A DNA stretch of 64,000 bases, from positions 6,001,079-6,065,078 of the forward strand of contig OZ316898.1 of the NCBI GenBank assembly GCA_973895155.1, given 5' to 3'. Position 1 is the stretch's first letter; each line of letters opens with the position of its first letter. This DNA is from Marsupella aquatica. Its lineage: Eukaryota; Plantae; Marchantiophyta. Both the position numbers and the translations under genes were made by a program. Under the pieces are notes generated by a model. That model was not told where the DNA came from. It was given only the letters and a program-made list of their open reading frames with translations, and ran no database searches. This document shows, piece after piece, positions 14,265 to 41,530 of the stretch.

Positions 14265-14828
14265 TCAGCGGCTTTTCACGAGGGGCATGGTTCACATGTA
14301 CAACTGAAGTGAGGTTTAAGGAATGGGAGGATATCAAAAACCCTAAATACCCCTTCATATGGAGAGTTTCTATAATTTAATTGGTAATGTCCGATCATGA
14401 TTCAGTCATGGTTGATATGAATGCACTCAGAAAAAACCAGGGCTATAAAGTAGTAAGACAATCACATTCATGAAAGGGAAACAACCCAAGAGTAAATAAT
14501 AACCAGGTCTGACTTACATTACAAAACCAGCCAATGAAATGTTAATAGGGGACCAGTATCTATCACTAACTGCAAATTGAATTTAGGTGAGAAGACAATG
14601 CTAAGTGTGGTGGGAAGATAATGTCCACAATGTCTTCCCAAACAGTGCATTCATACCAACCATGACTGAATCATGATAGGACATTACCAATTAAATTATA
14701 GATCGAAACTCTCCATATGAAGGGGTATTTAGGGTTTAGGGCATTTTTTTGATATCCTCCCATGATTCCTTAAACCTCACTTCGATCAGTTGTACATGTG
14801 AACCATGTGCCTCGTGAAAAGCCGCTGA
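14265..14828. repeat. Near-perfect inverted repeat: arms 14265-14427 and 14644-14828, loop ~216 bp
   Basis: TCAGCGGCTTTTCACGAGG...GAATGCACT is mirrored by AGTGCATTC...CCTCGTGAAAAGCCGCTGA; the differences are a few substitutions and short insertions in the right arm. Confidence 0.9.
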
Positions 14829-17351: not shown

Positions 17352-17815
17352 CACTAGTAGAAAATGGGGCCTTTTATGACTATGACACATATGACTTATG
17401 TGCTCAAATGACACAATATGTAAATGACATAACATAAATGACATTGAAATGACTGTCCAAAATGACGGGGTGCAAAAAATGACTAATACTTGCAATAGTG
17501 TCGTTTAAACCAATGAGCCAAATGACTTTGACTGCTATAATGACAACAATCATGAGTTGTAGTCATTTTGGACAGTCTTTGTGAATGACACAATTAACAA
17601 AAACTCTGTCATATCAGTGTTTCACATATGGGAAGTCATTTCAGGCGACGGTGACTAATGACTAATAAATCAAATATGCAAATATCAGTGTTTAAAAATG
17701 TTAGTAGTCATTTAAACCAAAAGTGATAAATGACATGATAAACAACATATGACTATTTTGAGGTTTATGGTTTAGTATATGTTTTAGGGTTTAGGGTATG
17801 ATTAGTCATCCAAAA
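17352..17815. repeat. CACTA left TIR and subterminal region rich in ATGAC/GTCAT
   Basis: Numerous ATGAC(A/T) motifs in both orientations in the first ~460 bp. Confidence 0.85.
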
Positions 17816-19208
17816 TGTATGGTAGTATATATAAAGACTAGTGGCACTCACATATTAGATTTGAAATACAATTAGAGACCTAACAAGCCTTCTTTTGTTG
17901 TGAGTCTCATCATTAAATTGATGTACAACTTAAAGGCTTGATAATCTCTAATAAGTATGTACATTTATATATACTTGCACCCATTTATTACATCTTTCCT
18001 ATATATGCCAAGGACTCCTGAAGTGTTTACATTCCTTAAGCTATATTCACATTTCACATGTTGGAGTATATATGGGGGCATGCAAGGTTGCCAAATAACA
18101 CTCTCGGGCATAGGTCTAGGGTTTAAGGTTTAGAATTTAGGTACTACATGCCTATATTTGCTCATGTCATTTTTTTCAATATATTATTCATGTTATTTGC
18201 ACAAAAATGTGGGGTGTCGAAGGCGGGCTTATCTTTGTCGCACCCGTCACCTAGACATGGAAAAAGTTCTTCAAGTGAAGGCGAGGATATAGACGATGAT
18301 GCAGGGATCCATGACAAGTCGGGGTCCAACGACGACTCCTCTTGCAGTCGGGGTGGGTTTCGCTGGGGCGTTGGTTCTAGCGATTCCAACGATGATTCGG
18401 ACGTGTACAAGCCAAGCTGGTGGGAAGATTAACTGATCAACTGATCCAAGAGATTAACGCATGGACCGTCTGATCCTGGAGAACCCAGTAGTCCTGAGTA
18501 GATTACCAACCTCATTTGGTGTAGTTCGATGTTGACAGCCATGACCAGTTGATGCAGTGATGGTAGAAATGGTAGTCAATCTTTTGCCAGCACGATAGTC
18601 TCGGAATCTATTGGGAGGTTACTCTTATGTTTTTACTCAATATTTCAGGACTTTGTGAAGTAAAGCCGATACCATTAAATGGAGTTTGAATCTATTAGTC
18701 ATTCCCTTATGCATTTTTCATTATTCAGTTTGTGTTTTTCGATGTTTTGCCTTACGAGAATGAGTAAATCTTTTCACCAAATGTCTTTTGAAAGTCTTCG
18801 TAATGATGTAGTGGTCTTACCCGTGACAGGTTCCATATTAGCGCTCGGCGCTAGCATTGGAATCCTCAAACTTATGCTTCTAACACCAGATGGATTCTTA
18901 AATATTTGTGGAGATGTAAGAGTTTGTATTACTCTCTCGTGATGAGTAACATCGATTTGGATGCGATTTATGATAGCGCCAAGCGCTAATAACGCTTACG
19001 GATAAAATGGTCCAAATAATGTCCATTTTGTCCATCTATCCATGAATTCCATTTGAATTTTGTAAAATATATATACGTGGGAGATTTGTTAGCGCTCGGC
19101 GCTATTGAAATGAGTAGTTTGAATCAGGTAATATGGAGTTGTTTTTGCTAGCGCTTGGCACTATCAATAAGGCCAAAACGATCAACGGTCATATTTTAAC
19201 GGTAACAC

Positions 19209-19279
19209 TGAGGATTGCTAGTCACGCGTAACCTTGAGGATTGCTGGTCACGCATAACCTTGAGGATTGCTGGTCACAT
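19209..19279. repeat. 26-bp tandem repeat x2.7 (TGAGGATTGCTGGTCACGCATAACCT)
   Basis: Units start at 19209, 19235 and 19261. Confidence 0.9.
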
Positions 19280-19559
19280 AAGACGGTTTCTGGTCCAATG
19301 GTAATCTTCCAAGTGTTCAGATCTGTTGGTGTTACCGTTGAGCAACACTCTAATGTGCTCAAGACTCCATGTCTTAACCTTTTGATTAGGCTTGGTGCTC
19401 GTTGGAGAGACATGATTCTCCTGGAGAAGCCTGTTCGAGCGTGACATTCTATACCTGAGTCTGTTACTTCGTACTGGATCAGGGGCTCTAGGAGAGTTGT
19501 ACGATACTGTCCAACGTTCTACTCAACGCCATCGCCATCTCTCAGTGGGTAATACGAGG

Positions 19560-22500
19560 ATGGGAGATAGTCATGCCGGTCATTCCGAGTCCTCACAGTC
19601 CTTTTTTTTCAGGTTCTGTGTACACCCGTCGCGTGACTCGGTCCGCTGCGTCTCATTCACATTCAGACATTGGCTCAACTCTTCCGACTGCGTGATCAAG
19701 AAGGGGGAGAATGGACACGAGTGAGGAAGTTGCTCAAGTTGATTTCGGTGTTGCTGGACTTTCAATGGACGATTACATTTCCAAGCATGTCTTGTCCTTT
19801 GGGAAAGATTTCAGAGGATTGGAGAAGGAGCCTCCACAAATTCCTCTATGTCGATTGATTCATATGGAAGTGGTGCGGACGTTGCAGAAGCAGAGCGCCT
19901 CCATCGATAAATTGAAGGAGTTGTTCCAGATTTCTGGATACAATTTGCGCATGGGCATGCCATTTTACGTACAGCCAACGAATGCGGATGGGGTTCCACA
20001 GATTTGCACTAATGAGATTAGAGCCTCTTGGGACCCAATCTGGGTTTCCAAGAATGACAAGTTCGAGGAAGAGTGTGACGCTGATCCTGATTTCAGAGTT
20101 TTGAAGGACAAGATGTTTTGTGTCTTTGATGGAAATCACCATTTGTATTCGTGGTCGATTGTGACAGTAGAGCATCCGAACAACATTAAGTACCACCCTC
20201 GTGTGACTTGCATTGTTTTCAATGGAGATAAAGGTTCCCTCGTAGAGCTCGAGGCTGCCATGCACGCTATCAACCAGTAAGCCAATCCTCAGGACAACCT
20301 CATTTAATATGACGTACTAGTTCAAGATGGATTTTGGATGTGATATTATCTTTGGTGTTTTACTAGCGCCCGACGCTGCTAATTTACATTTAAATTTTGG
20401 CATAGGTTGGGACAAGTTGTGGTCGAGCCATCTTGGATTCTTGATGCCGACAGAATCTCTCGTCTTTTATCCCGTGACCTAGAGCACTACAAACCCCTCA
20501 TTGATGCTACGAGTTATGCTAAGTTTGAAGCCATTCGAAAGAAGACTCGAAAGGGTTCTTGGTATACACACAAGATGCCACAAGACGCGCTCATCTACAT
20601 TTTGTGTGAGAACAAGATTAAATCTTACACAAACCAGTTCAAAGTGGACATGGATTTCGTAGCCTCCCAGGGGACTCCGTGGTCCGAAGAGGAGACGCAG
20701 AAGAGGCATGAAGCTATGATGAAGGAAGCGATAAAAGACTGGGCTATCAAAGTAACAAAGATAAACTCCATTGCTGCACCCTGATTTTGGTGACTACTTG
20801 GCTACATGTGCCAAAATGTTTCCCGTCACAGAGAAGAACAAAAGAGAAAAAAAGCCCGATATAGTTGTTTGTACTGTGGACCGTGCTCGTCTGTTTACTG
20901 CAGTTACTTATCTGGATCCGAAGTTAAGGTGTACCCTTCTTGTTGCCCATTGCACTCCGGAGATTCGGAAACAGTTCTTTCATCCGGCTAGTGTGAACGA
21001 CGATCCTGTAAAACAATGGTGCCATACCTGGCATATCTGGAATTCAGTGGAGGAAATTGCTACTGGATTGATCCTCACCTCGCTCGAGCAGGTTTTGGAT
21101 CGCATGCTAGATGATCGTCTTGTCAAGTCTGGTTGTGAGTCCCTGGATGTTCTCATGAAGTCCATTATCGAAGAATTCAAATCATTTGGAGACCTTGTCA
21201 AGGCTAAATTTTTCAACATAATGTGGCCATCAAAGTATGCAGACAAGGAGGACTACATTGAGCGGAACCGGAAACGAGCCAAGTGATACGTTTACCATTT
21301 CTACATGTGGATGGAGTTGCGATCTCCTGAGGTTTTGTGGGCTTACCCTGGTGCATTTCAAAAGTGGGTGATTATCAAAGATGGTGACCACCTTGTTGAT
21401 CTGTTTTCGATGTACCCAGCTGAGGGAAAGTTCCCACCTCGCGCCTTGTCAGAGTGGGAGAGACTCCACTGCCCATGGTATCTTGACACTGACAAATGGG
21501 ATCTGCCTTTCGACGAGGTGGAGAAAGACGCTTTCATGAAGTTACAGAAGTCGCAAATCCCAGCAAGGTACATATCGAAGATGAAGCAGGGTCTTGCAAT
21601 TGAAGTGGACGCTTCGACAACTGAACTGCAAAAGAAATGCGAGACAGTCATCGTGCATGTTGATCGGAGCCGAAAGCCAGGAGTGAAGGCCAAGAATGAA
21701 TCTGCAGCTCCCAGTGAATCAACTCGATCGCTTAAAAAATGTAAGTTTGCCTCTTAGGATTCAGTAAAGTATTCCCGCTCTTGTTTGTATGACATATTTT
21801 CCCCCAATTGATACTAGCACCGAGCGATATTATGAGAACTAGTTCCGTTGAGTAACGCCTCTCCGTCTTTCAGGGGGAAGGAAGTTGGATGCTACCGGTG
21901 ATGTAAAAGAGGACGCTACTCCTCAGGCCTCTGAAGCTAACACTGGTGCGGAAAATACACCAGATCAGGGAACCCCTGGGGAGAGTGGAAAGGCAGTGGT
22001 TCCAATGGACGCGACAAGTATGAAGAAGAAGAAAAAGAGAGGAACACTTGAGGATAGGCTCGGATCTTCATCCCGAGATTCAGTTGCGTCTACTGGATTG
22101 CAAAGAGATGTGGGGAATTTCAAACAAAAGTGTACTCGACATTGTTTTGTGGAGTCGAGTGTTACAGAATGTTTTGATTCCCTGTTTAACAAGGGAGAAA
22201 AGCTGGACTGGGTTTCTAATATTGAAGGTTGGGGGAAAGAGCTGGTGAAGTCTGGGGATCGAGCAAAAGGGGTTGTCCGAGAGGGAAAAGAAAGAGCTTT
22301 TGGAGTTGATGCTGGTTTCATATATCTTCTGACTGGGTTGAAACCAACACTTGTGGATAGGAAGGTTCCTAAATGGAACCTTCAAGATTATACGATTCCA
22401 AGTGCCTTTTTCAGAACAATGGATCCTTTCCTAGCAAATGATGGATTGCTAGCAATTTTGCACAGAGGCGACTATGACCAAGTTTCCGAGGTCATTGCAG

Positions 22501-23769
22501 CTTGTCAAGATTCACAAAAATTCCAGTGTATCTCGACACACAATGTTGTCATGGGCACTCCAATGTACAGGCCTCGCTCGGATATGCAGGTATGTATAGT
22601 AGCGCCTAGCGCTATTCCAAAGTTTATGTTTGGTGTCCTTCTTTGGAGATTGACGGCAACGCTAGCGCCAGGCACTAGTGTGGAATATCCTCTTCGTGAA
22701 ATGTTTCCGTATTCTCGACGTAGCATCTGATGTTTATTATGAACAAAACGTTATTCGATGTGCAGATTTTTACGCTCACTCTCAATGTTTTTGGGCGTGT
22801 TTCGTCCAAAGGTAGGGTCCCTAAGGATCCCAAATTTCGGCCTCTTTCACATATAGAGGATCCTTCAATAACCAATCTCATTGGTTTTCCCGTGCCAAAA
22901 AATGATCCTCTGCCGGAGCTTGCGTTTGCCGGGAATTCAAGGCTGCCTGTGGGTTTCATGCAGTCCGTTTTAGAATTAATTATTCTCCCTGGGGATATTG
23001 TCATGGACTGGACTGTTGGGGCCGGAAGTACATTTGTTGCTGGAGATCATTGTGGGAGGTTTGTAGTCGGGATTGAAAATCGTAAAGAGTTTCTCGACAC
23101 TGCCACAAAAGTTTTCTTTGGACTTCTCAAGAATAAAGAGGCCTCCACGTCCACGCCTCCGGACCGGCAGGTGGGGAGTAAGAAGTAGGATAGACTCCGT
23201 GTTGTTCTTAATTTTGATTCTGACGAGGACAATGATGGAGGCGATGGTACGCAACAGTCCAAAGATGATGGGGCCTCCAAGAAAGTGGTGAACCTTGGGT
23301 CTTCTGAATCTGAGGGTAGTGAAGAGTCTTCTGAGTAATGATCTTCAGCTTCCCTATCTTTTTTTTCTTTTTAAGTGTGACGTTAGTGTCTCCAAGATTC
23401 CACCATTTTCCCGGACCCGACTAAAGATATCGGATTCAACTTTCCAGGTTTGAGTGGAATCTTCGGAAGCGCTTTCAACTACGAAGGAAAGTCGCTAGGA
23501 ATGCAATAGAAACCCCGGAGAAGCCGTTTGTCTTGCCTTCTTATGCAGAAAAGGCGGCTCGAAAAGCAGATTCTGTGAGAATGTTGACTTGGGAAAGCAA
23601 AGGCCTGAGGCTAAAAAGGGGCTCTGATAGAAAGTTTATGAAGAATCGCTATGTCAATGACATCGTCCCGAGCAAGTATGTAGACGACGAAGCTGAGTCT
23701 ACTGATAGATCACAAAGTAGTGAAGAAGAATTAGAACTAGATTCGACTGATTCAGAATCTGATGGCTAG
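19560..23769 (+). pseudogene. ParB/Srx-like domain + N6-adenine/N4-cytosine DNA methyltransferase-fold fusion gene; 4 exons, disrupted
   Basis: Introns 20277-20405, 21741-21873 and 22590-22765 are GT-AG and join the listed ORFs. Exon 1 has a ParB/Srx-like core (IPLCRL..VRTL..LKELF..GY...FCVFDGNHHLYSW). Exon 4 has RLPVGFMQSVLELIILPGDIVMDWTVGAGSTFVAGDHCGRFVVGIENRKEF, matching the C-terminal block of beta-class amino-MTases (KP..L...I...PGD.VLDPF.GSGTT..A....GR..IGIE). Stops at 19693, 21284 and 23186; frameshifts at ~19605 and ~20770; acidic tail to 23769. Confidence 0.75.
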
Positions 23770-25221
23770 CCAAACTTTAAAACTATATTTTGGGGATATA
23801 GATATTGGCTATTTTACAAAATAGCGCTTGGCGCTATTGTGAACACATGTAATATTGATGGGTGTTTATAAAGTGAGACGGACTGTCCACATTGTTTTTT
23901 GACTAAACTTTCCTCTGTGAAGCGGACAATCTTAACTTGGGATGTATTACAATTGGGTGATAATTAGAATACGACTTCCCCCTTTCCCAATGTTTCATCA
24001 ATTGGCATCTGATGGTCTTTAGTTGATCTATGTTTTTAAGTTTGTTATTGAGGTCTGTATACTAGCGTCGGGCGCTAGTATACATATGTTTTTGGGGATA
24101 CTTTTGCATATAGATGTTTTGAATGAGGTTTTGGGTATTTTGGACTATTTCAGGACTGTAGCGTTGGGCGCTAGTATCACGATGTGTTTCAAAATGATGG
24201 ATTTTAGAGGGTTCGATCTCATTTTCCGAGAGATGTCGGATTAGGGAAGATTTTTTTGGTGCAGACATTTGCTGCTATGAGCTTTACTGTTTGCTGTTTG
24301 TTGTTTGCTGTTTGCTGTCACCGTGAAAAGCCTCTCTCTCTTGTCTCATTAATTTTCGTCTGAACCAAACGGCAAATCATGTCTGAGGTCTGCTCTACTC
24401 TTCAAAGTCCGTTAATTTTAGAAGCATTATACTTCTTCCCTTCTGGTTATACTGCATTCTTTCATGTGATTTCCTGTCAGCAATGTGTGATTGTTGTGTG
24501 GTGGTTGTGCAGGGTTTATGGGCGTCTTGATTTGATTGAGCTCTCTACAGATTGTCTTCAAACCTTTCACCCTGAAGGTATTCCTGTCTGGCCTTATAGT
24601 TTTTGCAACAAGCCTGTAATTATTAATTCTGCTAAGGCCTTAGGTGCGTATTTGAGAATTGGAGCTGCTTCGAACACTTCAACTAATGATCTCCTGAACA
24701 GGATACCCATTAAAATTCATACAATCATGTCAAACCTAGAATTCAGTTGTACAGTATATTTACTTCTCCTGAAGTAATTTGATAGGGTGTGTCTCTCAGG
24801 GTTTGTATGTTTATTGATTGAGAGCTATGTACGGACGGTTGTGATTTGTTTGTTAAAGCGGAAGGTTTGGAGGTGATGATCAAAATGTTTTCAGATGTAT
24901 GTTCTGTTCTGGTCAAAGTGAAACAGAGGGTGCGTTGTTTTGTCAGCTGGGATGTTAGAGAAAACTTAATAGCTGGTGTAGGCCTGCAGGCTGGTTTGGC
25001 CAGACTGAGAATAAATATTGGGGCAATTGGGGAATAAATATTGGGGAGACTGATGAGTGTGGTAACCGCAGGTCTGTGCTGGTTGGAGGTGCGACTGGGG
25101 CTGGCTCAACTGCTCTGTGAGTAAGTACACTTCACTTACCTTCTTTGTGTTTGTCTCTTGGTTTTTGAATGGACTTTGGAGTGATGTTGAAGGCAATTGT
25201 GCAGATTTTATTTTCTTCAGC

Positions 25222-25920
25222 ATGGCACGGGCTGCTGCTGCCTGGTTGGATCCCAAGTTTGCCCATAAGGAGCACCTTCGCATGGATCCCCCCTGTTGTT
25301 TTGAATGTGATGAGGGAGGTACTGTTTTGTTCTGCGATGGGCCTTGTAGTCGACATTTTCATTACTTAGTTGATGGGCAGGATGCTGAGGAGCCTGATGG
25401 CCATGGGCCTGAGTGCACATGCATTGCCATTTCTAGAGGGCATGATTGGGACAAGGAGTGGCTCTGTGACCTCTGTCAGCAGAACCGAGCTTGTTGCTTT
25501 GCTTGTGGGTTACTTGGCCGAACCGTGAAACCCACTATAGATGAGCCCCTTGTGATTCAGTGTGCACAGGATGATTGCTATTCCTTTTATCACATGGGTT
25601 GTTTGCGGACTATATTGAGGGCGAGGGAGTTAGCTCTGATAACTTATGCAGAGAACTCAGATGCACATCCCGCTACTCTGATATGCCCAAGGCATTATTG
25701 TGATGTGTGCAAGGAGTATCGGGATGGCATCTGGGAATTTATCCAGTGTCGTAGGTGCCCTCGTGCGTGGTGCAGAGATGAAGGACCAAAGGCAGACAAA
25801 CACCTGAAGAGAGGGATTAAGGGTAGAGAAACTTGGGATTGTGGTCCATGGCGTATGGTGTACTGCAATCGCCATGTCATTCCAGAGGGTTCTGATGTGC
25901 CACCTCATGATTTCAAATAG
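25222..25920 (+). CDS. Stand-alone EDM2-like composite PHD-finger protein (232 aa)
   Basis: ATG follows a splice acceptor (ttttcttcag). CFECDEGG.VLFCDGPCSRHFH / CFACGLLG / VIQC...C.SFYH.GC / CPRHYCDVC / QCRRCPRAW / TWD...RMVYCNRH.I follows the order and spacing of the EDM2 PHD region as recalled. Reading frame uninterrupted. Confidence 0.85.
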   Translation: MARAAAAWLDPKFAHKEHLRMDPPCCFECDEGGTVLFCDGPCSRHFHYLVDGQDAEEPDGHGPECTCIAISRGHDWDKEWLCDLCQQNRACCFACGLLGRTVKPTIDEPLVIQCAQDDCYSFYHMGCLRTILRARELALITYAENSDAHPATLICPRHYCDVCKEYRDGIWEFIQCRRCPRAWCRDEGPKADKHLKRGIKGRETWDCGPWRMVYCNRHVIPEGSDVPPHDFK

Positions 25921-26141
25921 ATCATAAGCCTTCAGTTGTGTAGAAAACACGACATGTATTAAGTATTCATGAAGTGGACTAAATTGTTTGATTGTATGAA
26001 GTGGACTACACTGTCTAATGGACTAAACTCAAATGGACTAAACTATCTGATTGTATGAAATAGTTGAATCTTAAATTGTTGCATGAATTTCATTGAGTGT
26101 TTGGGTTGGATAAATTATTGCTTCTTGTATTTGTTACAATA

Positions 26142-26935
26142 ATGCCAAGGACGCGCAGTAGATTGGGAGCTGACCTTGAAGGCAGAGTTGAGAGGCTACG
26201 CCTGAAGCTGAGTGGAATGAGGTTGGTCCCTGCCAGTTCTGCTGTGCAATGGGAGTTTTCGCCTGTACACAAAGACACGTATAGATCACCCTATTCATTA
26301 AAAGTGTATTTTATTTTGTTCACTTTTAGGCCTCTAAATGTTCACTTTTTGGTCTCTAAATGTACACTTTTTAAACCCAAAAGGTACACTATAGTCCAAT
26401 ACTCTACACCTAAATGGTGAATTATAAACTTGAGGACACAAAAATGATCTTTACTGGAAGGAGTCTCATCCTAGTTCATGTACAAAGGATGAACATGGTG
26501 GTATATTTGATGGTCATCACCTTTATTTCTTGCCCAATTGTACACTTTTTGAAAGCCAAATGTACACTTTCTATCACCCAAATGTTCAGATTTTGAATAA
26601 TAATTCACTTTTAATGAATAGATTGATATAGTCGGCCCATTACTCTGGATGCTCCACCCTTGCCCATAGGTTTTTGTATTGTGGCAGTCGATAATGGAGT
26701 GGTACAACCACAGCAGATCTGCTACTCTGCCTGTATCCATAGTTGTGAGGATTTTTGCCCAAAATGTCGAGTGCGCCCTGGGGATATATATAGGCGGGAT
26801 GGACACATTAGACTGCAAAGGTGGTGTGCCTATATAATGTTCCACCATGATGAGCCAATCTTGGGACCAAGGGTTGAGACTGTTTGCCCTAGAGTAGAGC
26901 AACACTTAGTGGAGAAAGACCAGTATCAATTCTGA
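26142..26935 (+). CDS. Small two-exon Cys/His-containing hypothetical protein (146 aa; exons 26142-26278 and 26632-26935)
   Basis: GT-AG intron 26279-26631 joins two ORFs in frame (KD-T-RPITLDAPPLPIGF...ICYSACIHSCEDFCPKCR). No family recognised. Confidence 0.45.
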
Positions 26936-27763
26936 TTGTATGATGACTGTTTTGTCAATGGCAAACATATGAAGAGCCTGAATGGAGATACATAACAAAA
27001 GAACTAAAAAACATCACACTCACCTTAAGAGGCAAGACCTAAAATCCACCCAAGGTCTTAAAATTCTTGTTGTCCCTTTGAGGGATTTGGGCATAAGAAG
27101 ACAAACTTCACGTAATGTCTCTCAAGTTTTGTAGTACTGCCTTTCTAAACCCACACCCTTAACAACTCCTTCAACCCGGGTCTCAGAACTTTCTCCTTTT
27201 TGATAATTTTGAAGACTGAGTGACTGTATTTCATTCTTACTACTGCACAGAAACACTATATGTTTAATTATGTAGATTACATGAAACCCTTTTAGGCCCT
27301 TGTCCATATGTATCCTGGTTTGTGTGGGGATGATGAAATGTTGTGATGTGGAATCTATTCTAGTACCTGCCCAAATAAAAAATGCCTATTTGAAGAGGAT
27401 CATTTCAACAAATGTATTCAAAAGTCAAAGCATGAAAGAGGGGATTGATGGACATTATGATTAATGTTTCTTATTGTACTCACTGTTTTGAAGGGTCTGA
27501 GATTGCTGACTACTGTGAACACCCTTGGCCTAAATCTGGTTCAGGTAGGCCTTTCTTTGGTCTTGTAAACTGATGACATTTTGATTTGTACAATTCAAGT
27601 CTCCTTCAAATACCCATTGCCACTTACAATATGAAATGAGATTAGGTAACGTACCCAAGTAAATAATTTCTGATCAAGTTGCTAATATGTCATTTGTTTA
27701 CCTGTTGTTGGCATGCATGTGTAGTTTGCTATGAAGAACCAAAAACACACTTAAAGGTCTTCA

Positions 27764-28860
27764 AACTCGGTATTCGTTCCCGTAAAGAACAAGATGGGGT
27801 TGGTTTGATAGATTTAAACAATAATAAAGAACTAAAGATGTTTTCCACACATAGTAATCAAGTTTGATTACTTTAATAAGGTACTTTGAAGATCGCTCCA
27901 CAACGGTGAGTGGTTTTTAATGACAACTCAGCATCATGTAACCATAAATTAATGAAAAGGAAATGATTAATAAAACACAAGGGAAATAATCTCAAAGTAC
28001 GCTAGGGGAGTCTGGAATTGACCAAGGTTGCTCCTTAGGCATAAGTCAAAATGAAAAGACTTAAGGATTCAAATCCATATTGCTTTTTAGGTCTAAAATG
28101 TTTACTAGAGTACCTTTTAAAATGCCGTAAACATGTCTTATCCTTTCTTTCTAAGTGGTACTCAGATAAGATCTAAAAGGTAGCTACTTCAACATTTAGA
28201 TGGTACTAAGCAACATGAAAGAAAATCCATCAATTTCAAATAAGACTTAAACTCAATGAGTTAACTTTAAGAACTCAGGAGATTGCAATGAGTCACCAAA
28301 GAGGAATCTATCATCACAAGATCCAAAGATTTCTTACAAATGGATTTTATTTCCTGTGTTTATAATCAGAGGTAAAAACACAAGAAGGAGGTAAGTCTCT
28401 CCAAATGTTAAACCTAATCTCGAACTCATAGATTCATGATCAATGGGTTTAACACAAGGTAGAGGCAAAAATGCAAAACTTAACCATACTTCTACACTAG
28501 TGGTGGAGGGGTCTTATAGTAAAAACCTATAGGGTAAGAGGTCATAGGGTCGAAGAGACATGCCTCTTCATACTCCTCAAAAAGTCAAAACAGCGATTCA
28601 GTAAGTGAAAAGCCGGGAAATGGCTAAGTAAGAACCCGTAAAAGCATAAAAGCGTAAAGACATAATCGCGTAAAAGCGTAAAAACGTAAAGGCGTAATCT
28701 GGTGAATGCGGTAGACTTAAAGACTTACCAAATTCAACTATTTTTAACTTCCTAACTATAAGTCAGAAAACTCTGAGATTTTGCCGGGAGGTTTTCCTAG
28801 GTACAGACTACACACTAAATAAGTTTCATAGCTTTTAAAGCTCTATAACACATTTTGAAA
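27764..28860. repeat. Diverged long direct repeat, copy 1 (copy 2 at ~32064-33450)
   Basis: Colinear anchors AAACTCGGTATTCGTTCCC, GGGAGTCTGGAAT.GACCAAGGT, AAATGCCGT.AACAT.TCTTA.CCTTTC, GGAATCTATC, GACATGCC, CGTAA array, TTTTTAACTTCCTA.CTATAAGTC. Confidence 0.75.
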
Positions 28861-28915
28861 AATAGGGAAAGATGCACTATTCTTAAAACTTAACTAAAAA
28901 GACTTAGATTCTGCT

Positions 28916-31350
28916 TCAAGCTTGTTGTCGGATGTCTTCTGGTTCGAGTAGCTCCACGAGGGTAACAGTCCGAGCTTGAGTAACTTCCATCAGCTCAGCC
29001 TGGCGTGGGGATCCTCGAGAGTAGGGTAGGCATCTCAATTGCCTTTCAGGATACATCAGGGGCATTCTTCTCCTTAGATAACATATGTCTATTCGAAGAG
29101 CTTCTCTATATATCCCAATCACGTCATAATTATTGCAAGTAGCAGCATATACTTGGGGATAATGGTATAGAAATTCATCAGAGTTCAGCATCCTGGAATA
29201 GAAAGGGTGAAGCCTCCATTTGACATCTCTGAAATACCGGTTGAAGTTGGCTAGAGTTTGAGAGGTGACATTGTTCCAGATTCTCTGTTTCTCAGCTAAT
29301 GAACTGGTTGAAACAAGGGTAACCTTGGGCTCTCGAGGAAGATAAGCGTTCTGGGGAGAAGTAGATTTCTTACTCTGCATGAGAAAAGAAACCACAAAAT
29401 CTAGGGCATAAGCTGCCAAATTTCCAAAATATGCCAGAACTAAATCTGAATCCTCCACCTCCACCTCCACATCTCCTTGAAGTAGCATCACAGCAAGAAT
29501 GGGTCGGAAATAGAGAGAGTCAGTCCAGAACTCATCGAATTGTGCCATCTCCAGTCTGGAAGTTCCAAAACACCTGAGGTCGAAGATATAACTGGCCTCT
29601 GTCTTCTTGAGATAGTAGTATTTCCAAAATTCTCCAACCGGTGATCTGTTGGCCTGCATAATCTTACAGGTCTCCACATACCTGTGCACTTGGGACTCTG
29701 GATGTCTCGGGTATCTACTCTCGATGGTGGCATTCCGAGGTGTTTGAGTAGATGAAGTGACAACTGCTACTAAGTTTGGATTGGATCTTAAGGCAGTATC
29801 AACATCTTCAAATCCCTGCCTTGGGGATGACTCAAGAGAATTATCATAAGATCTATAAGTTTCACCATCTGAGGATGGATCAGAGTCTTCAGGTAGATCT
29901 TCTCTGTCAAAAGGGTGCTCATATTGTGACCGATTGTAGGTGGGTCCTTCTGTGGGTTCGTAGTTGGAATCAGGGCTGTAAGGTTGCAAACCTGGGCTAG
30001 GAGTAGGACTAGCAGTTGGACATTGTTGGATCAAGTTGCGGACCACAGATGCTATCTGTCGAGGTTCACACTGTAGTAGTTCTAACAAGTCATCCACAAT
30101 GGCCACACAGCTGATACTATTTGTTACTGGAATAGGCTCACTTGTTTCTAGGGGAGGGGGCTGTACAGTGACAGGAGTACAGATCACAAACTCCATTGGT
30201 GCTGGTTCTCTTGGGGGAGAGGTTATTCTGACAGGGCTTAGCTGATCATGAAATGGTGATCCCAAACTAACAGCCTCCATTCTCAAATTATTAACAGCAT
30301 CATATAGTCCATCATCACTACAACTGAGGAGAGATATCAACTTATCAATAAGCTGCTGATTCGACTCTGCCTTCGAAGGAGTGGACCTGGTGGTCTCATG
30401 AGGAGTAGCATCAGTTGGTGTAGCAACATCGTCTTGTTGATGAATGCTCCTTACTTCTTCAGCTTCTAGTGGATCTGCATCCATAGTCCGGCTAGGGAAA
30501 TTCTCATTACTTATTGATTGGCGAACAACTTCCCTGCTATGCATAGGAGAATGTGTAGGGATTTCTAATGAAGTATCCTCCATAGGAACATCAGCATTCT
30601 CCTCAACGTTCTGATCATTTGAATTCAATGGGGTGACATGTACAATGTCCTCCATAGGAATTTCTTCTTCAATACCCAAGTCAATCAGGAGTAACCCCTC
30701 TCTGTCTCTTCCTCCAGATATAAACAGTCATGAGTATAATAGAGCTGAGAGAGATAATTCTGTAAACAAGTGGTCCTCCCTGCTTCCAAGCTCCTTACTT
30801 GATCCTTCATTACATTAAACAGAAGTAGGGCCCAATTTACTTTTATAGCTCCACTGTGAGCAGCTACAATGGTGTTAGCCAAGGCCACAGGACAGAGAGT
30901 TGGCTTTTTCGGATGAAGAATGGGTACCAGAAATTCCATGAGCACTCTCAATTCAAGATAAGTACACTGGGACAAGTTCCAACCATTCTTGGCATTTCGA
31001 GTTCCTGAGAAGTATGGAGCAGATAAGTCCTGCTTCTTGGAACATAACGCCTCTCCTTCTGACGGGCATCCAAAGGCGTAAGCAATTTGCTCAACAGTCC
31101 ACAGGCTGGGGTGAGCTCAAATCGTTTGCCTGAATTCAATCGAGATGATAGTCCCCTTCACAAAATCCTGCAAGTAGGAGTCGAGCTCGACATTCCAGGG
31201 GATCCTGAGCAAGCGCTCCAATCCTAAGTGTTGTAAAGAGTCTTGTAAATTAGAAAGACTATCAGGCGCTCATGGTATACGAGCTGCCACTACTTTTGAG
31301 ACTGCTAGAGCTTCAATTTGATACTGTTCCTCAGCACCCAGGTTTGCCAT
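28916..31350 (-). pseudogene. Frameshifted mobile-element-associated ORF: conserved-looking N-terminal domain, Pro/Ser-rich linker, globular C-terminal domain
   Basis: ATG at 31350 (MANLGAEEQ..), stop at 31270, frameshifts near ~31150 and ~30695, then a 587-aa open segment. NGWNLSQC...LMEFLVPILHPKKPT...LANTIVAA.SG..KVNW..L...V resembles repeat-associated hypothetical proteins of bryophytes (recalled, unverified). Confidence 0.6.
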
Positions 31351-32063
31351 AGCTGCAACGGTGATTTGCGTGCTGCGAAGGTTGCTTTCGAAGAGAAAGA
31401 GCAAGTGAATAGGGGTGGTGAAAATACAGGAGTGAGCGCCTGAACTCTGTGCTTGATTCCTATCAAGGTATGAAGTCCCCAATCCGTTTCTAAGTCCCGT
31501 TGCGAAGTTAGCCGTAGCGCCATAACGTGAACTTTCCTTAAACACATAAGGCGTAAGCCGTAATCCCGTATTGGCGTAAACTTGTAACAGCGTAAACCCG
31601 TAAACCCGTTACGCTCTTACGCGTAAATGCGTAATCCCGTTATAAAGTATACCCGTAGTTTACACTTGGCATTTTAACAGCAACAGCAGGCTTAAATACT
31701 GTAAAAAGTTTAAATTTTTCAGTAATTTCAGGTTTTCGGTATTACCCAATACTCACATAGCCCTCTCCTCAAACGGCGCCGTGCCCTCACAAGCCTTCAG
31801 AATGAGGTAAATAATATTTCTTGACCCTGAAACTGTTGATTCTTGTTGCAAGGGGTTCTCCATTTAAAGTTGAAGTGTGTCCAAATAAACATTATCTCAT
31901 TGATTCTTAATTTGCAGCAATCCATTGAGTGAGAAGTTTTCCCTGAAAGAACATATACTTGGAGTCTTACATCAAAAGTGAATTTGCCTTTTGAGATATT
32001 CATTGGTTTCAAAAATTGTATGTAGTATTACATTAAGGACATAAATCAACATTTAATGCCCAA

Positions 32064-33450
32064 AACTCGGTATTCGTTCCCATGGAAGAACATGTTGGGA
32101 ATGGTTTTCTATCAATTAACACTTATGAATGACTAAGGTGTCGAAAACACAAAGGTGAGCCTTTTACTATGGATGCTCAGCAAGGCATAGATTTAAATGT
32201 TTGCTTAACATTATAAATACGATTAACAAAATGGAATAAATTAACAAAACACAAGAAAATCTTGAGGTATGATGAGGGAGTCTGGAATAGACCAAGGTAA
32301 CTCCTCAACAACACTTAATTTGTGATGATTTAAGGTGAAAAATCCGCAAGAACATTTCTGGAATGAAATACTTTACTAGGATGATTATTAAAATGCCGTC
32401 AACATATCTTAACCTTTCCTTCCAAGGTACTCAGTTAGGATTAATAACCAATCACTTCAGCATCCAGTCGGTACTCCGAGTCACGAATAATGAACACCAT
32501 CATCGTCAAACTAAAGTCATAGGTAATTGGTCAATAACATTCTTTACACCCTGTGCAAAAGCAATGTCATGCCAAAAACTTATGCATCAAGAACTTAGAA
32601 ATGTATAGCCTTCACCAATTAAGGAATCTATCTCCATACATTCAAAAGATTTCACCATTTCACAAGGTTTTACTTCTCTGGTTTGATCTCCAACATTCAA
32701 ACACAAGGAAGGGGGAAGAATTCCTTTGTATTAATCACTCATGCAAATACAGAGTTTCTCTCTACAAAGTGAAGCCTTGTCATGCTGCAAATTTGCAACA
32801 TAGTGCTTACATAATTCTTTCACATTTCAAATGACATAAATTCTACTTTATATAGGCTGGTAGAAACCCAAGGAGAGAGAAAATGAAAGGACATGCCCTT
32901 TCATGCCTCAAGGGTTCTTGAACTAAAGTAAAAATAACAAAGGTGTGCTACAGTAGTACCTAAGGGTCACATGAGGGTTCCTAGTATATAAAACTAACCA
33001 AAAGGTATTGCAAATGTGAACTAATGTAAAAGTGACATTAAGGTAAAACTAATGAATAGTGGCTTTGTCCTAATTTTAGTTTCTAAACCAAATATCAGTT
33101 TGAGATGAAACGTTCCCAGAGTATTCTCTTAGGTATAGTCTTCATGCTGGTAAAATCTCAGACTTTTCTGAGGTGTTTAGGTACTTCAATAAAATACCAA
33201 AAAGTACCGGAAATAAAGAACTACAGAAAATCGGAAAAAATTCCAAGTGTTGAAGGTATAAACGCGTATACACGTAAAAGCGTAAACTCGTAAAGACGTA
33301 ATCGCGGTGCAGCAAAAACTTAGCAGATCCAAACATTTTTAACTTCCTAGCTATAAGTCGGCTTGAGCTGAAACTTTCAGGGATGATTCTACTCCGTAAT
33401 GACTACCTCCTGAAAAAGTATGAAACTTTTCTGACCATGAGAACTATTTA
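32064..33450. repeat. Diverged long direct repeat, copy 2
   Basis: Same ordered anchors as 27764-28860. Confidence 0.75.
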
Positions 33451-34002
33451 ACTAAAATATCAGAGATCGGCTAATCGTGGTAATTGCACACAGAGCTCAT
33501 TTTTGATGAAGTGCTTTGGAGTCCGGTTCTTGAATCTTCTAGTCTGCATTGCTTCTCCAATGATGTCCAGTCTTCTTTCTTGGTAGCATGCAAAGAGCAA
33601 GGATTTATATGACGATCCTTGTCCAATAGAGGCAATAGCCTCCGATGAAGCATAACATCAGGTAAAGTGTTCAGTTGATCTAAATTGCTACAAAAGGTAA
33701 CTATATTACACCTTTGAGTTAGAAAAAGTTCAAAATTTATAAATTTTTCATCATTTCCAACTAATCTACTACATTACAGCATGTACTATTCTATTGGCAA
33801 TGAAGGCTAAAGTGGGAGCTGCCTTTACCTCAGTTGGAGTACTGTACCTCAAATGTATGTCTATTCTTCACTTGTGCACACGTTTGCTTCGCATGACGCT
33901 CTAGAAGATGGTATGGAAGGGTTTTGGAGTTGTCTAGAGCTCTGCAAGATGTCACAGAAGAAAGATGTGCAACTGTGTTTTTGATTAGGTAGTGCTGCAA
34001 TC

Positions 34003-37000
34003 ATGGCTTCTAGCCAGGCTGGGTCACATAACACTGCACATACAATAGAGGCAGACAACCTGAGAAGTTTACCTCTTTCCCATCCACGTCGAATACAGCG
34101 TCGTGATGATAACTTATGGGCTCGGGAACAGACAGCTTGCGCTCTGGTAGTGCTGATCATAGAATGTATTGCTCTTGCATGAAATGCAAAGGGATTGTTA
34201 AGACTACTCGAAAGACCAGTCGACAACATCTTCTTAAATATGGCCGCTACCCTGCCTGTCGAGTGTGGGTTGAAGACTCTTCTGATGAGGAGTGGAGATC
34301 CAATTACATCCGTAACTCTGGTCCAGAGGCACTAAGGGCAGGAATGTCTCGAGAGGCATTCCACTCAGGCATGCCATCAATAGATGTTGAAGAGCAGGTC
34401 AGAGTTTTACTTCAGGAGACATTGGCAAGAGCTTCTGAAGAGTCTGACGAATATGTGGATAATGATCCTCTTTTGATATAGATTCAATGTTTCAAAATGA
34501 TGAGAATGAGGCAGATCCATCCTCTACTGAGACCAGGGCTGAGGACACACCTACAGCAGGGCATCCTATAAATCCTGTCCCTCTGCAAGGGTCTTTAGAA
34601 GAAGCCATGAAACCCTTATTTCCAGGCAGTAAGACAGATGTAGTTTCCTTCATGTTGTTGTTTTTAAACATCTGTCACAACAATAGGGTTCTTGAACATG
34701 GGAGTGAATGCCATGTTGTCTTTGTTGACTGAGCATGGAATGCCAACAGAGCACACTCTCCCTAAAAACCTATATGCTGCAAAACAATTACTGAGAAAAT
34801 TGGGTTTAGACTATGAGAGAATCCCAGTCTGTGAGAATGGATGTATGTTATTTAGAAATGAGATTGCAGAGTTGGAAAATTGTTCCAAGTGTAATCAGCC
34901 AAAGATGAAGTTAGTGGGGAATTCTTTACAGCCTGTGAAGGTCTTGAGATATTTCCCTATAATCCCTCGATTGAAGAGATTGTATGCCACTAAGGGTACA
35001 TCTAAGCTAATGACTTGGCATCATGAGAACAAGAGCAAGGACAACATGGTCCAACATCCAGCAGATTCAAAGGCATGGAAGCATGTGGACACAAAGATCG
35101 ACCCTACTTTTGCTGCTGAGCCAAGGAATGTGCGAATGGGATTGGCACTTGATGGGGTAAATCCATTTGGGAATAATTCTACTGCCTGGTCTACATGGCC
35201 AATCCTGCTGTTGAATTATAATATCCCTCCTTGGCTTTCCACAAAGAAGTTCTTTGTCATGCTGGCTCTTCTAATTCCAGGTCCTATGTCTGTAAGCGAG
35301 GAACAATTTGATGTATACATGGCTCCACTTGTGGATGATCTTGAGACATTATGGTCATAAGGAGTAGATTGTTTTGATGTTCTACCAAGGCTAGGATTGT
35401 AGCAACAGTTCAAGCTAAGGGATTCAGTATTGTGGACAATCAATGATTATCCTGCATATGGATTAGTCTCTGGCCAACAACATGCAGGGTACAAAGGATG
35501 TGTGGTTTGTGGGCCAAATTGTGTGGCACATGGTTCAAAACAGTTGGGCAAGTTACTGTTTGCTGGCCATCGTTGCTGGTTACCACAGAAGCACTATTTT
35601 CGCAAAGAGGAAGTGGCAAAATACTTTAATGGTGAGGTAGAGGCACGAGCTGCACCATGTAGAGTGTCCAGCTCTGATAGGAAACGTTGGGAAGAAAAGG
35701 CCGCTAAATATGTGGAGAAGAAACCAGGGAATGCGCTGGATGATGAGAACTCTCCAGTAAAGAAGAATGGAGTGAAGAGGGTTACTGGATTATACAAGCT
35801 GCCGTACTGGAGTGTAAGTATCTGATTTCCCATACTGAATCCCTCAGTGTGTATTAATGTTAAGTAGCAAAGAGTAACATTTCTTATTCTAACTTAGTTT
35901 GTACTGAACTGTGCGTCCAATGCAGAAACTTCTCATCAACCATTGTTTGGATCCCATGCATTGTGAGAAGAATCTTGCACACAACATTGTGCACACTATT
36001 TTGGGGACAAAGGACACTCCTTCTGTTCGAGAAGACATGAAAGTCATGGACGTGCGGGAACACCTGTGGCTGGTTCCAAATCCAGATCCAAAAAAAGATT
36101 CAAAGATCATGCCGCCAGCCCCATACTGCCTCAGTAAGACAGAGAAGACTAAGTTCTTAGAGGTATTGTTGACCTTTAAAGGGCCCACTGGTTTCAGCAG
36201 TTCTTTGGCTAAATGTGTCACAGTTAAGAAGAAGTTATCAGGGCTGAAATCTCACGATTTCCATCACCTCATGCAACAAATCCTTCCATTGGCAACAATG
36301 GGATTACTTGATGAAGGTGTTCGGTTGGCCATAGCCAGAGTGAGCAATGTGTGGTGTACCAGCTGTGCCAAGGTTTGGGATCCCTCACAATACGACTCTG
36401 TGATGATGGATGTTGCATTCACACTCTGCCTTATGGAAATTCATTTCCCACCAAGCTTCTTTGATGTTATGACCCATCTATTTGATTCATCTGGTTCAGG
36501 AACTAGATATTTGTGGTCCAGTGAACATTAGATGGATGTACCCAATAGAAAGATATCTAAAGACCTTGAAGGGTTATGTTTGAAACAAGGCACGTCCAGA
36601 GGCTTCTATGACTGAAGGCTACCTTCTGGATGAATCTTTAGGATTCCTTTCTGAATACATTCAGATCGATGTTAAGGGGACAGGAATGAGAACATGGGAC
36701 TTGGAGAAGAATCCTGGTGTTGCAGGCATTGTCTTGGAAGGAGCTGGAAAACAGATCACCTTGGAGTGGAATGATATGATAGCTATGCATCATTACATAC
36801 TGGAGAATGAAGAGCTGGTGGAACCATGGTATAGGTATGAGCATGGTTTATATTGTTAAGTTCTCTGTTGTTTATTATTAAACAGAATTGAGTTTTGAGC
36901 AGAAATTGTGTGGGCCTAGGAGCTGACTATCATTCTTGCCATGCAGGGTTTATGATGATCAAAAGGAGGCAGTTACCAAGCACAGCTCTAGCAGATTTCC

Positions 37001-37707
37001 GGAAAGAATGGATGAAGAATCCAGGAAATCGGAAGAATCCTGTGCCTTATCCCTCTGATTTGGATGAGTTGCCTCCTTTTAGATAATGGTTTGAAGTGAC
37101 AATTAGAAGGCATAATTTGAAGAATGAGTTTGAACAAATGGTGTTGGCAGCGTATAGTGTACCACCTAGTCTGAAGGCACTACGGTACAGGGCCTGCAGA
37201 GCCTATGGGCACCATTGGAGGACCATTCCATCACTAGGTTCCTTGATTGATTGTGACTCATCTGGGTTCAAGACTTTTGATTCTGGGATGGCTTGGACAT
37301 TCACTGAGAAGCGGGTCATTAGGTCAGGGGCAACAGTAGATGAATCTGTACAATATGTGGGGGTGTTGACAGACATCTTAGTGTTGAACTATGGGCCTCT
37401 GATAAAGGAAGTGGTCCTTTTCAAAGGAAGGTGGGCAAACCCATCTTGGACTCCCAAAGCCACTGCAAGTATGAGATATGATGTGTCTGGATTGTGGCAA
37501 GTAAATTTTCAGAAGGAGCTGGGTGCTTCCAAGAAAATGGACTATGTATTGCCACGACAGATAGAACAAGTGTTTTTTTACCCAAATGATAAGGGGATTG
37601 CATGGAGGACAATCCTCCACAAGGAATCCAGGTCTATAAGGGTGTTGGGTGATTACATGAAAGTTGATTTCCATGATACTATGGATGACAATGTAAGTTT
37701 CACATAG
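34003..37707 (+). pseudogene. tnpD: CACTA TnpD/Tnp2 transposase, disrupted (transposase-associated domain, Transposase_21, DUF4218, DUF4216)
   Basis: MYCSCMKC...HLLKYG; HPADSKAWKHVD; EPRNVRMGLALDGVNPF; STWPILLLNYNIPPW; WTINDYPAYG; LDPMHCEKN; SGLKSHDFH; FPPSFFDVMTHL; WMYPIERYLKTLKGYV*NKARPEASMTEGY; YVGVLTDILVLNY..VVLFKGRW..QIEQVFF. Several stops (35358, 35399, 36581, 37084) and frameshifts. Confidence 0.95.
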
Positions 37708-38398
37708 AGTTGGCAGAAGCCTGTACAACTAGACAAGAGTCTGGACCAAGTACTACAGACAAAGGAAAAAGAAAGTATAAAAGGAAATGAATGGTTTGAA
37801 GATACTGTACAGTCCGGTTTCATTTAGTTGGGAGTGGGATCATACTAACATGGCATGCCATGGTCTAGCAGTGAATGCAGCGAATACCTCCATACGAGGA
37901 GGAACGAAATAAGAAGGTACCAGACAACAATAGAAAATTCAGAGAGATATTTGGATCAAATTTCAATTTCATGTGAGTATAACCTTGCATATTGTTTTGA
38001 ATGTGCAAAGATGTGTTAATATTGCTCATCAGCAACATTAGTTGGTTTTTGATACTTGTCATTCATGAATTGATATTCTCTGATGTAGACTGGGTGCAAC
38101 ACAGACCGTAGGGCGCAAGAAGGAAACAAGTGCACGTCAAACTCCTAGAAGTGAAGTTACCACACAGAGGAGACAGAGCTCCAGACTATCAAGAATTGCC
38201 TCAGTGAGTATGGCAGAGTCTGGTGATGAGGGCTCTGAATTAGATTATGACACTGATGCTGAGTATAGTGAAAATGAGAAACTAGAAAGTTCATCCAAGG
38301 TGAGATTCCTATATTACATTTCACCAACATTATGAGGAAACTATAGACATTGGTAGTGATTCTGTTTAATAACATTGGTTTTAACTTGATCTGGACAG

Positions 38399-40884: not shown

Positions 40885-40989
40885 ACATTTTCTCTGATCA
40901 TGTAGAGCAGAGAATTTTTGAATATTTTGGTTACCATTGTTTCACTCATGCGAGTGAAGAATGTGTACTTTCTATCACTTCATCATAAA

Positions 40990-41133
40990 GACTTCTGTTT
41001 TTTCAATTGTTCTATACTAGAGCTTGTGAATGTTGGAGTGTGAATTTCTGAATACAATGATGACTTCTGTTTTTTCAATTATTCTATATTAGAGCTTGTG
41101 AATGTTGGAGTGTGAATTTCTGAATACAATGAT
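40990..41133. repeat. 72-bp tandem duplication
   Basis: 40990-41061 and 41062-41133 differ at two positions. Confidence 0.9.
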
Positions 41134-41243
41134 GATGCGCAAAGTGATGTCTTTGTTTAGGGTTTTAAGTGGATTCATTGTATGTGATTTTGAATGTAAC
41201 TATGAGCTCTTCTTAGATACATCCCAAATGACATTACTTAGAA

Positions 41244-41530
41244 ACACCCTGTATGACACCCTCAATGACACCTATATGACATCCTCAATGATACCCTGCA
41301 TGACACCCTTAATGACACCATGTATGACACCCTCAATGATACCATGTATGACACCCTCAATGACACCTTGTATGACACCTTCAATGACACCTTGTATGAC
41401 ACCCTCAATGACACTCTCAATGACATCCTGTATGACACCCTCAATGACACCTTGTATGACACCTTGTATGATATTTTTAATGACACCATGTACGACACCC
41501 TCAATGACACACTAAATGACACCTTAAATG
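41244..41530. repeat. 12-bp subterminal tandem array (ATGACACCCTCA / ATGACACCTTGT), ~23 units
   Basis: Directly visible; shares the ATGAC core with both TIR regions; explains the spurious low-complexity ORFs here. Confidence 0.95.

Follow-up and report, generated by a model that had tools for sequence, protein, structure and literature searches.

The genome segment analysed here, a window of 64,000 nucleotides (nt) from Marsupella aquatica (Marchantiophyta; GCA_973895155.1, contig OZ316898.1, positions 6,001,079-6,065,078 of the forward strand), harbours a CACTA/EnSpm DNA transposon. In addition to the pieces of its transposase, this element carries a four-exon accessory gene whose predicted product begins with a domain of the ParB/Srx fold and terminates in a methylase-like region. 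The gene is surrounded and interspersed by eleven copies of a short palindrome, TAGCGC-N3-GCGCTA (Table 1; coordinates refer to the window throughout). We found that these palindromes are real sites, which are kept off the exons, occupy homologous places over deep divergence, change with the lineage of the gene and follow the gene across transposase superfamilies.

The palindromes were counted in the window and, as a control, in 100 dinucleotide-preserving shuffles. Five exact copies were present in the window versus none in the shuffles. Allowing for up to one mismatch raised the number to nine, again versus none, and with up to two mismatches twelve matches were obtained, whereas the shuffles averaged 0.44 and never exceeded 4. 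Eleven of the twelve are located within 18839-24173, while the remaining one, a copy with two mismatches at 60825, is a lone stray as chance predicts. With respect to the gene, four palindromes are positioned upstream, one each in introns 1 and 2, two in intron 3 and three downstream. This amounts to eleven sites within 5.3 kb around the gene, the clustering of short palindromes at or near a parB gene that marks parS-type sites. The exons do not contain any of them, and with non-coding sequence making up 40% of the span, an exclusively non-coding placement of all eleven would occur by chance with p ~4e-5. A first-pass annotation of the window had listed the same eleven positions with five perfect copies and had seen none in the exons or elsewhere in the window, all of which is borne out, save for the weak stray at chance level. 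The same annotation described the flanks as unrelated and argued against a tandem duplication. This holds for nine of the sites, but those at 24063 and 24159 have a 31-nt stretch in common with 81% identity and look like the product of a local duplication.

In every site, the central triplet reads Y-N-R (pyrimidine, any base, purine), which suggests that the palindrome extends further. In its fuller form, the motif reads (C)TAGCGCC-N-GGCGCTA(G) and is roughly 17 bp long; the eleven sites appear to be best explained as decayed copies of it. Together they depart from this motif at 16 places; 15 of the departures are transitions, as the earlier annotation had remarked for the mismatches in general, and 14 are C>T or G>A. 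At three of the positions (21827, 22608 and 22674), the intact palindrome letter is found in other copies of the family. Each palindrome holds two to four CpGs, and the ratio of observed to expected CpG in the non-coding sequence, 0.97, is largely owing to the sites. From the C>T and G>A spectrum we infer a decay as expected of cytosine-methylated DNA. The sites were probably cytosine-methylated in the past, and the changes in the window copy would be typical of methylated, silenced DNA.

Table 1 Features of the palindrome-bearing gene and its carrier element in the M. aquatica window
Feature	Position	Strand	Description
Palindrome 1	18839..18853		Upstream; perfect for TAGCGC-N3-GCGCTA; position 7 C>T relative to the fuller consensus
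Palindrome 2	18974..18988		Upstream; perfect; position 9 G>A relative to the fuller consensus
Palindrome 3	19090..19104		Upstream; perfect; position 7 C>T relative to the fuller consensus
Palindrome 4	19149..19163		Upstream; 1 mismatch
Palindrome 5	20364..20378		Intron 1 (20278-20405); 2 mismatches; position conserved in L001, L002 and L010
Palindrome 6	21815..21829		Intron 2 (21743-21873); 2 mismatches; C at 21827 in other copies
Palindrome 7	22600..22614		Intron 3 (22591-22765); perfect; 10 nt past the 5' splice site; G at 22608 in other copies
Palindrome 8	22663..22677		Intron 3; 1 mismatch; G at 22674 in other copies
Palindrome 9	23822..23836		Downstream; perfect
Palindrome 10	24063..24077		Downstream; 1 mismatch
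Palindrome 11	24159..24173		Downstream; 1 mismatch; 31-nt stretch in common with palindrome 10
Exon 1	19711..20277	+	ParB/Srx-fold domain (predicted); DGNHH here, DGNHR in the family
Exon 2	20406..21742	+	Conserved in the family, no known domain matched; frameshift and in-frame stop
Exon 3	21874..22590	+	Low-complexity linker followed by the first half of the methylase-like region
Exon 4	22766..23188	+	SAM-binding end of an N6/N4 DNA-methylase fold (PF01555 profile positions 165-220)
CACTA/EnSpm element	17352..41872	+	24.5 kb; terminal inverted repeat CACTAGT(A/G)GAAAAT; GGA 3-bp target duplication on both sides
CACTA transposase, broken pieces	34692..37707	+	Transposase_21 (tnp2), DUF4218, DUF4216
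SAM, S-adenosylmethionine.

We then compared these sites with those at homologues of the gene on other contigs (L001, L002, L010 and L013; identities refer to exon 1). In L002 (60% identical), GCTAGCGCCGGGCGCTAGC is positioned 465 nt before the start of the gene, and intron 1 contains a close variant together with another copy of GCTAGCGCCGGGCGCTAGC. L001 (65% identical) has CTAGCGTCGGGCGCTAC in intron 1. In L010 (49% identical), GCTAGCGAGGCTCGCTAGC occurs twice upstream and GCCAGCGAGGGTCGCTAGC once in intron 1, all three being of the form CTAGCGAG-N-CTCGCTAG. When the four intron-1 sequences were aligned, the palindrome lined up while the rest was largely unalignable. L013 (32% identical) bears a different palindrome of 18 bp, which is found three times upstream. 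A scan of metagenomes with a narrow alignment yielded three short loci, one of which was informative.

The loci of the paralogues in Riccia sorocarpa contain 7 to 14 perfect palindromes each, which are located upstream, downstream and in introns; those within the genes are all intronic. The main class, CCAGCG(A/G)-N3-(T/C)CGCTGG, agrees with the window site in its length and in the core AGCG-N5-CGCT, and takes the form CCAGCGG-N3-CCGCTGG in L005 and L006 and (G)CCAGCGA-N3-TCGCTGG(C) in L007 and L008. In a tree of the ParB-like domain, a CTAGCG clade and a CCAGCG clade separate with 100/100 support each, and variants of the motif follow the sub-branches. This pattern points to a motif that has long been retained and has changed stepwise along the gene tree. 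The first-pass annotation had suggested looking for different palindromes in diverged homologues, and both the two clades and the other 18-bp palindrome of L013 are of this kind.

A second class of palindromes, GGCGGA-N-TCCGCC and a variant thereof, was observed at the Riccia loci L004, L005 and L006. Palindromes of this class (GGCGGA-N-TCCGCC or TCCGGCGAG-N-CTCGCCGGA) make up regular ~95-nt arrays between divergent transposase and accessory genes (L004, 1545-3894, 8368-9212 and 14268-15085; L006, 8382-9353). The Riccia elements, which are of the MULE (Mutator-like element) type, may each possess two recognition systems.

To delimit the exons of the window gene, we combined open reading frames (ORFs) and splice sites with alignments to proteins of Riccia; protein searches were run exon by exon. 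This copy of the gene is dead. Exon 2 has suffered a one-base frameshift near 20763-20781 and contains an in-frame stop codon (TGA, 21284-21286); exon 4 is terminated by a TAG at 23186, where other copies have CAG and the frame continues into an acidic tail to ~23338; and DGNHH has taken the place of DGNHR. Other copies read differently at these breaks, with one base fewer at 20763/4, C at 21284 and C at 23186, as well as NHR (within NHRLYSW) in place of the altered motif, the latter in loose contig ends at 20138. When contigs of four public runs were mapped onto the stretch, 736-983 short contigs per run matched with 88-100% identity, which makes the gene a member of a high-copy family; as these contigs stem from many copies, they show which alternative letters occur, but not which copy has them. 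In one contig of unrecorded kind from run X1, intron 2 is missing (21739 is joined to 21874); it could be either a transcript or an intron-less DNA copy.

With exon 1, a family of 233 representatives was collected at E up to 0.001, whose named members come from Riccia sorocarpa (43 gene models) and from Adiantum ferns. Pfam did not match exons 1-3 or any of eight full-length or exon-size homologues. A profile search with the exon-1 family against PDB sequences returned only a chance match (E 0.13), and the Riccia protein P0164 gave no match to PDB sequences. The structural model of exon 1 was built on 44 sequences and reached a predicted local distance difference test (pLDDT) score of 91.7. 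A structure search with this model among 48,161 chains, carried out independently of Foldseek, gave no chain with Z of 2 or more outside the ParB/Srx superfamily; the 13 chains that reached this value include KorB, PadC, sulfiredoxin, the N-domain of pNOB8 ParB, SerK, SbnI, SspE, BrxU and Spo0J. The best match in this wide search was KorB, with Z 6.8 over 95 residues. The top rows of Foldseek were all ParB, Noc, KorB or Srx proteins (E 0.09-0.5), and re-comparison of the Foldseek list gave Z 7.5-8.0 over ~96 residues for ParB and Noc, at a root-mean-square deviation of ~3. DGNHR, which is near-invariant in the family, is of the nucleotide-binding motif type of the superfamily (GxxR, DGxHR type). 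Judged by its model, exon 1 adopts the ParB/Srx fold. We consider this label sound, but a shared fold does not imply a function.

The region that follows is less well defined. In the model of a full-length Riccia paralogue, which has a mean pLDDT of 50, the middle is helical at a pLDDT of 70-89, and Atlas provided only weak leads for it, DUF6551 and DndB (0.76-0.80). The C-terminal end, by contrast, is the sole part of the gene that is recognised by Pfam: exon 4 matches PF01555 with 30.3 bits (cut-off 26.7) at profile positions 165-220 of 221, and motif I of the SAM-binding site (FxGxG type) is present. The Riccia paralogues match with the same end, mostly with scores that fall short of the cut-off, and the first 160 positions of the profile were never matched in either the window gene or these paralogues. 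The catalytic motif IV, (D/N/S)PP(Y/F/W), was not found across the whole family. In the position expected for DPPY, the window gene reads YLLTG, other copies read YLPTG and the Riccia paralogues read D[LMI]PTG, which suggests that the methylase fold has been kept without its usual catalytic motif. The designation as a ParB-methyltransferase gene in the first-pass annotation is accordingly apt for exon 1, but as regards the methyltransferase only the SAM-binding end can be recognised and DPPY is absent.

The carrier displays the full set of CACTA/EnSpm features, that is, the termini (terminal repeats at 17352 and 41858-41872), the 3-bp target duplication, subterminal AATGAC repeats at both ends and a tnp2 transposase (PF02992, E 4e-40). 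Outside of 18839-24173, the 24.5-kb element does not contain the palindrome, neither in the stretch from 24.2 to 41.9 kb nor in the two subterminal regions, to which a transposase would bind. No inverted repeat or target duplication that would bound the 5.3-kb cassette of gene and sites was found, and there is no second copy of the cassette in the window. A ParA-like ORF was not seen in the element, although no dedicated search for one was made. The partner transposase in Riccia, which is present at four loci, is MULE-like (Atlas score 0.95), and tnp2 does not occur in its vicinity. As gene and palindrome occur together in a CACTA element here and with a MULE-like transposase in Riccia, it is the accessory gene, and not the transposase, that the site accompanies.

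Based on the sequence data, we consider it moderately probable that the palindromes are bound by the protein of the cassette itself in dimeric form, which would act on copies of its own element. The cassette would be a portable unit that consists of one accessory gene and its own ~17-bp sites. The product of this gene, with its ParB/Srx-fold domain at the N terminus, long helical middle and methylase-like end, would recognise the palindromes as a dimer and would thereby find copies of its own element. Once there, it would act on chromatin or DNA, either by counteracting silencing in the manner of VANC in VANDAL elements, or by marking the DNA. That the cassette protein rather than another factor is the binder, and what would happen upon binding, we only infer. 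The first-pass annotation had already proposed a self-recognising module similar to ParB/parS. The linkage of the sites to the gene and their same relative places in diverged homologues agree with this proposal. On the other side, no helix-turn-helix (HTH) domain was recognised and the DPPY motif is absent. The term parS-like is appropriate for the clustering of palindromes near a ParB-like gene, but TAGCGCC-N-GGCGCTA and the canonical parS have no half-site in common, so that the likeness is one of design only.

Several of our findings weigh against binding by the cassette's own protein. Joint descent of gene and sites would equally give a motif that tracks the tree, so the covariation indicates retention and not recognition, and with about five motif states the independent contrasts are few. 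No palindrome was present near the gene in L009, and the short contigs L003, L011 and L012 had one or none. The occurrence of the second class, GGCGGA-N-TCCGCC, in some Riccia elements means that more than one binder may be involved. With respect to the protein, the Z scores of the exon-1 fold matches are middling, and neither an HTH nor another DNA-binding domain was identified, Foldseek giving no match with the full-length model of mean pLDDT 50. Finally, the stretch was not found in any of the RNA runs searched.

A more far-reaching version of binding by the cassette's own protein can be envisaged, although we regard it as unlikely in its entirety. Here, a self-contained recognition cassette would be exchanged among land-plant transposons of the CACTA, MULE and Sola superfamilies, and its protein would be a eukaryotic, nucleotide-dependent clamp of the ParB type that loads at the sites and spreads from there, so as to mark the element or to protect it against silencing. 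In this case, the methylase fold would serve as a SAM-binding or DNA-reading module and not as an enzyme.

Alternatively, the palindromes might form a cis-regulatory cluster, made up of promoter, intronic and downstream enhancer sites, whose reader is a host factor or some other element-encoded protein rather than the ParB-like one. The ring of four upstream, four intronic and three downstream sites around one single gene would suit such a role, as would the location of some Riccia arrays between the divergent transposase and accessory genes, and the sequence as such does not indicate who the binder is. However, the motif stays with the accessory gene whether the carrier is CACTA or MULE, and it varies between lineages in one genome. 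Since it differs among the Riccia paralogues of the same genome, a single host factor is no explanation for it, and we regard cis-regulation as a possible but rather improbable account.

It is less likely still that the palindromes act as structural or epigenetic signals in DNA or RNA that do not require a dedicated protein, such as a cruciform, a hairpin, a target of small RNAs or methylation, or a recombination site. The perfect, GC-rich and CpG-containing palindromes would be compatible with this, and so would their decay by almost exclusively C>T and G>A changes, by which the sites were probably cytosine-methylated, along with the non-coding CpG ratio given above. On the other hand, a stem of 6-8 bp with a loop of 1-3 nt makes a poor hairpin, and a role in RNA is difficult to reconcile with the upstream and far-downstream sites, which are probably located outside of the transcript. 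The retention of the AGCG-N5-CGCT core and of a fixed spacing over deep divergence fits better to base-specific reading.

Plant DNA transposons such as En/Spm and Ac bear repeated short motifs that are bound by their own proteins, and the palindromes could by analogy be sites for the CACTA transposase or a TNPA-like protein. We rejected this as very unlikely: the ends of the CACTA element bear another repeat, AATGAC, neither subterminal region nor the part from 24.2 to 41.9 kb contains the palindrome, and the same core occurs in Riccia together with a MULE-like transposase and without tnp2. An origin of the cluster from chance, base composition or the remnants of a tiny inserted repeat, for which the longer stretch common to 24063 and 24159 might be quoted, hardly merits consideration and is refuted by the lack of perfect sites in the shuffles, the unrelated flanks of the nine other sites and the recurrence of the motif in L002 and other independent homologues.

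Further features were observed in the same CACTA element. An ORF at 25117-25920 (+) encodes an NSD-type PHD zinc finger (PF22908, E 1.5e-9) and is possibly another cargo gene related to chromatin; it has repeat arrays of its own, made of short units, just 3' of it (25972-26059 and 26314-26588). An ORF of 587 amino acids on the minus strand (28916-30679) is flanked by arrays of an 8-nt unit, (A/G)CGTAAA(N), at 28628-28710, 31550-31634 and 33240-33314, which is another layout of a gene together with its own motif. Pfam does not recognise this ORF, which is also unrelated to the MULE-like partner transposase of Riccia. The right subterminal region of the element contains a 12-nt tandem array that is derived from the AATGAC unit (41228-41555). 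The entire element is bracketed by inverted repeats of ~170-260 nt with 74-82% identity (16860-17117 and 42401-42675), both of which start with GGG(C/G)TT(T)CACTTCCACAAA beside a possible TGA duplication. It seems that an older element served as the insertion site of the CACTA element.

Elsewhere in the window, two copies of a ~1.7-kb segment (839-2502 and 10024-12114) are 72-90% identical, lie 9.2-9.6 kb apart and each contain a coiled-coil-like ORF (1785-2345 and 11392-11937). A small element at 14262-14831 has nearly perfect inverted arms of 93-97% identity over 36-59 nt and, by its appearance, is a miniature inverted-repeat transposable element or a hairpin repeat. An intact, intronless gene for a leucine-rich repeat receptor-like kinase of 1,091 amino acids at 51463-54738 (-) is presumably an ordinary host gene.

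Among known systems, ParB/parS, Noc/NBS and KorB/OB of bacteria and plasmids resemble the cassette in that a ParB/Srx-fold domain at the N terminus goes along with palindromes of ~16-17 bp that are clustered at or near the gene. In contrast to these systems, the cassette resides in eukaryotic chromatin, its ParB-like domain is fused to a methylase-like domain, and no HTH is recognisable. Paralogues of ParB and Noc likewise differ in specificity by a few base positions. Fusions of a ParB-type module to an amino-methyltransferase fold, as in the Marsupella gene, are known as ParB-HTH/Dam proteins of chlorophytes and chytrids and as ParB-methylase proteins of phages and plasmids (PMC4738411). The eukaryotic fusions of that study are of the Dam class, whereas the remnant described here is of the PF01555 (beta) class and its catalytic motif is missing. 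The combination of ParB-type module and amino-methyltransferase likely has its ultimate origin in prokaryotes or phages.

The anti-silencing VANC proteins of Arabidopsis VANDAL elements have experimentally been shown to bind motifs in their own non-coding DNA, with loss of methylation (PMC5735166, PMC10398659). As in VANDAL, the short motifs of the cassette are confined to the non-coding parts of the element, and protein and motif diverge together among related elements. VANC is, however, related neither to ParB nor to methylases, it is carried by a MULE and the motifs that it reads are non-palindromic; only the layout of the motifs can be compared here.

The closest architectures have been described in algal transposons. 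The Ectocarpus transposon Sola1-1_Ec32 encodes an accessory protein of 1,104 amino acids that is ParB-like and a DNA methyltransferase, and the authors already proposed that it binds and modifies its own element, with no binding motif reported (PMC12477816). Like the product of the Marsupella gene, this large protein (~1,100 amino acids) joins a ParB-like part to a methylase part of the N4C/N6A type and is encoded by a giant cut-and-paste transposon. Its carrier is a Sola1 element of a brown alga, though, and not a CACTA element of a land plant, and in the cassette the catalytic motif is absent while the sites are defined, conserved and lineage-specific. In red algal Plavaka elements (EnSpm lineage; Bostrychia and others), PAG2 combines PF01555 with SET and PAG3 a ParB-like domain with a 2-oxoglutarate-dependent (2OG) oxygenase; inverted-repeat arrays are positioned beside the ParB-like gene, and the accessory genes move between superfamilies (bioRxiv 10.1101/2025.02.11.637652). 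The carrier of the EnSpm/CACTA lineage, the PF01555 and ParB-like domains and the inverted repeats near the ParB-like gene are shared with the window element, but Plavaka has two genes and tandem arrays, where we find one fusion gene and single, dispersed sites that also lie inside introns. Compared by description, the window gene shows the algal accessory-gene architecture of ParB-like and PF01555-type parts in a DNA transposon with inverted repeats nearby.

The idea of self-recognition is itself not new, as it has been voiced for these algal transposons (PMC12477816; bioRxiv 10.1101/2025.02.11.637652). What the Marsupella element adds is a CACTA carrier in a land plant, the exact motif and its drift between lineages, sites that are conserved within introns, and the assignment of these sites to the accessory gene and not to the transposase. 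If the cassette protein does read them, it would represent, after VANC, a second and unrelated kind of sequence-specific self-recognition by plant transposons, and one that derives from a bacterial ParB module. The exact site makes a direct binding test simple to design, and the cassette could become a source of programmable parts for DNA binding or epigenome targeting.

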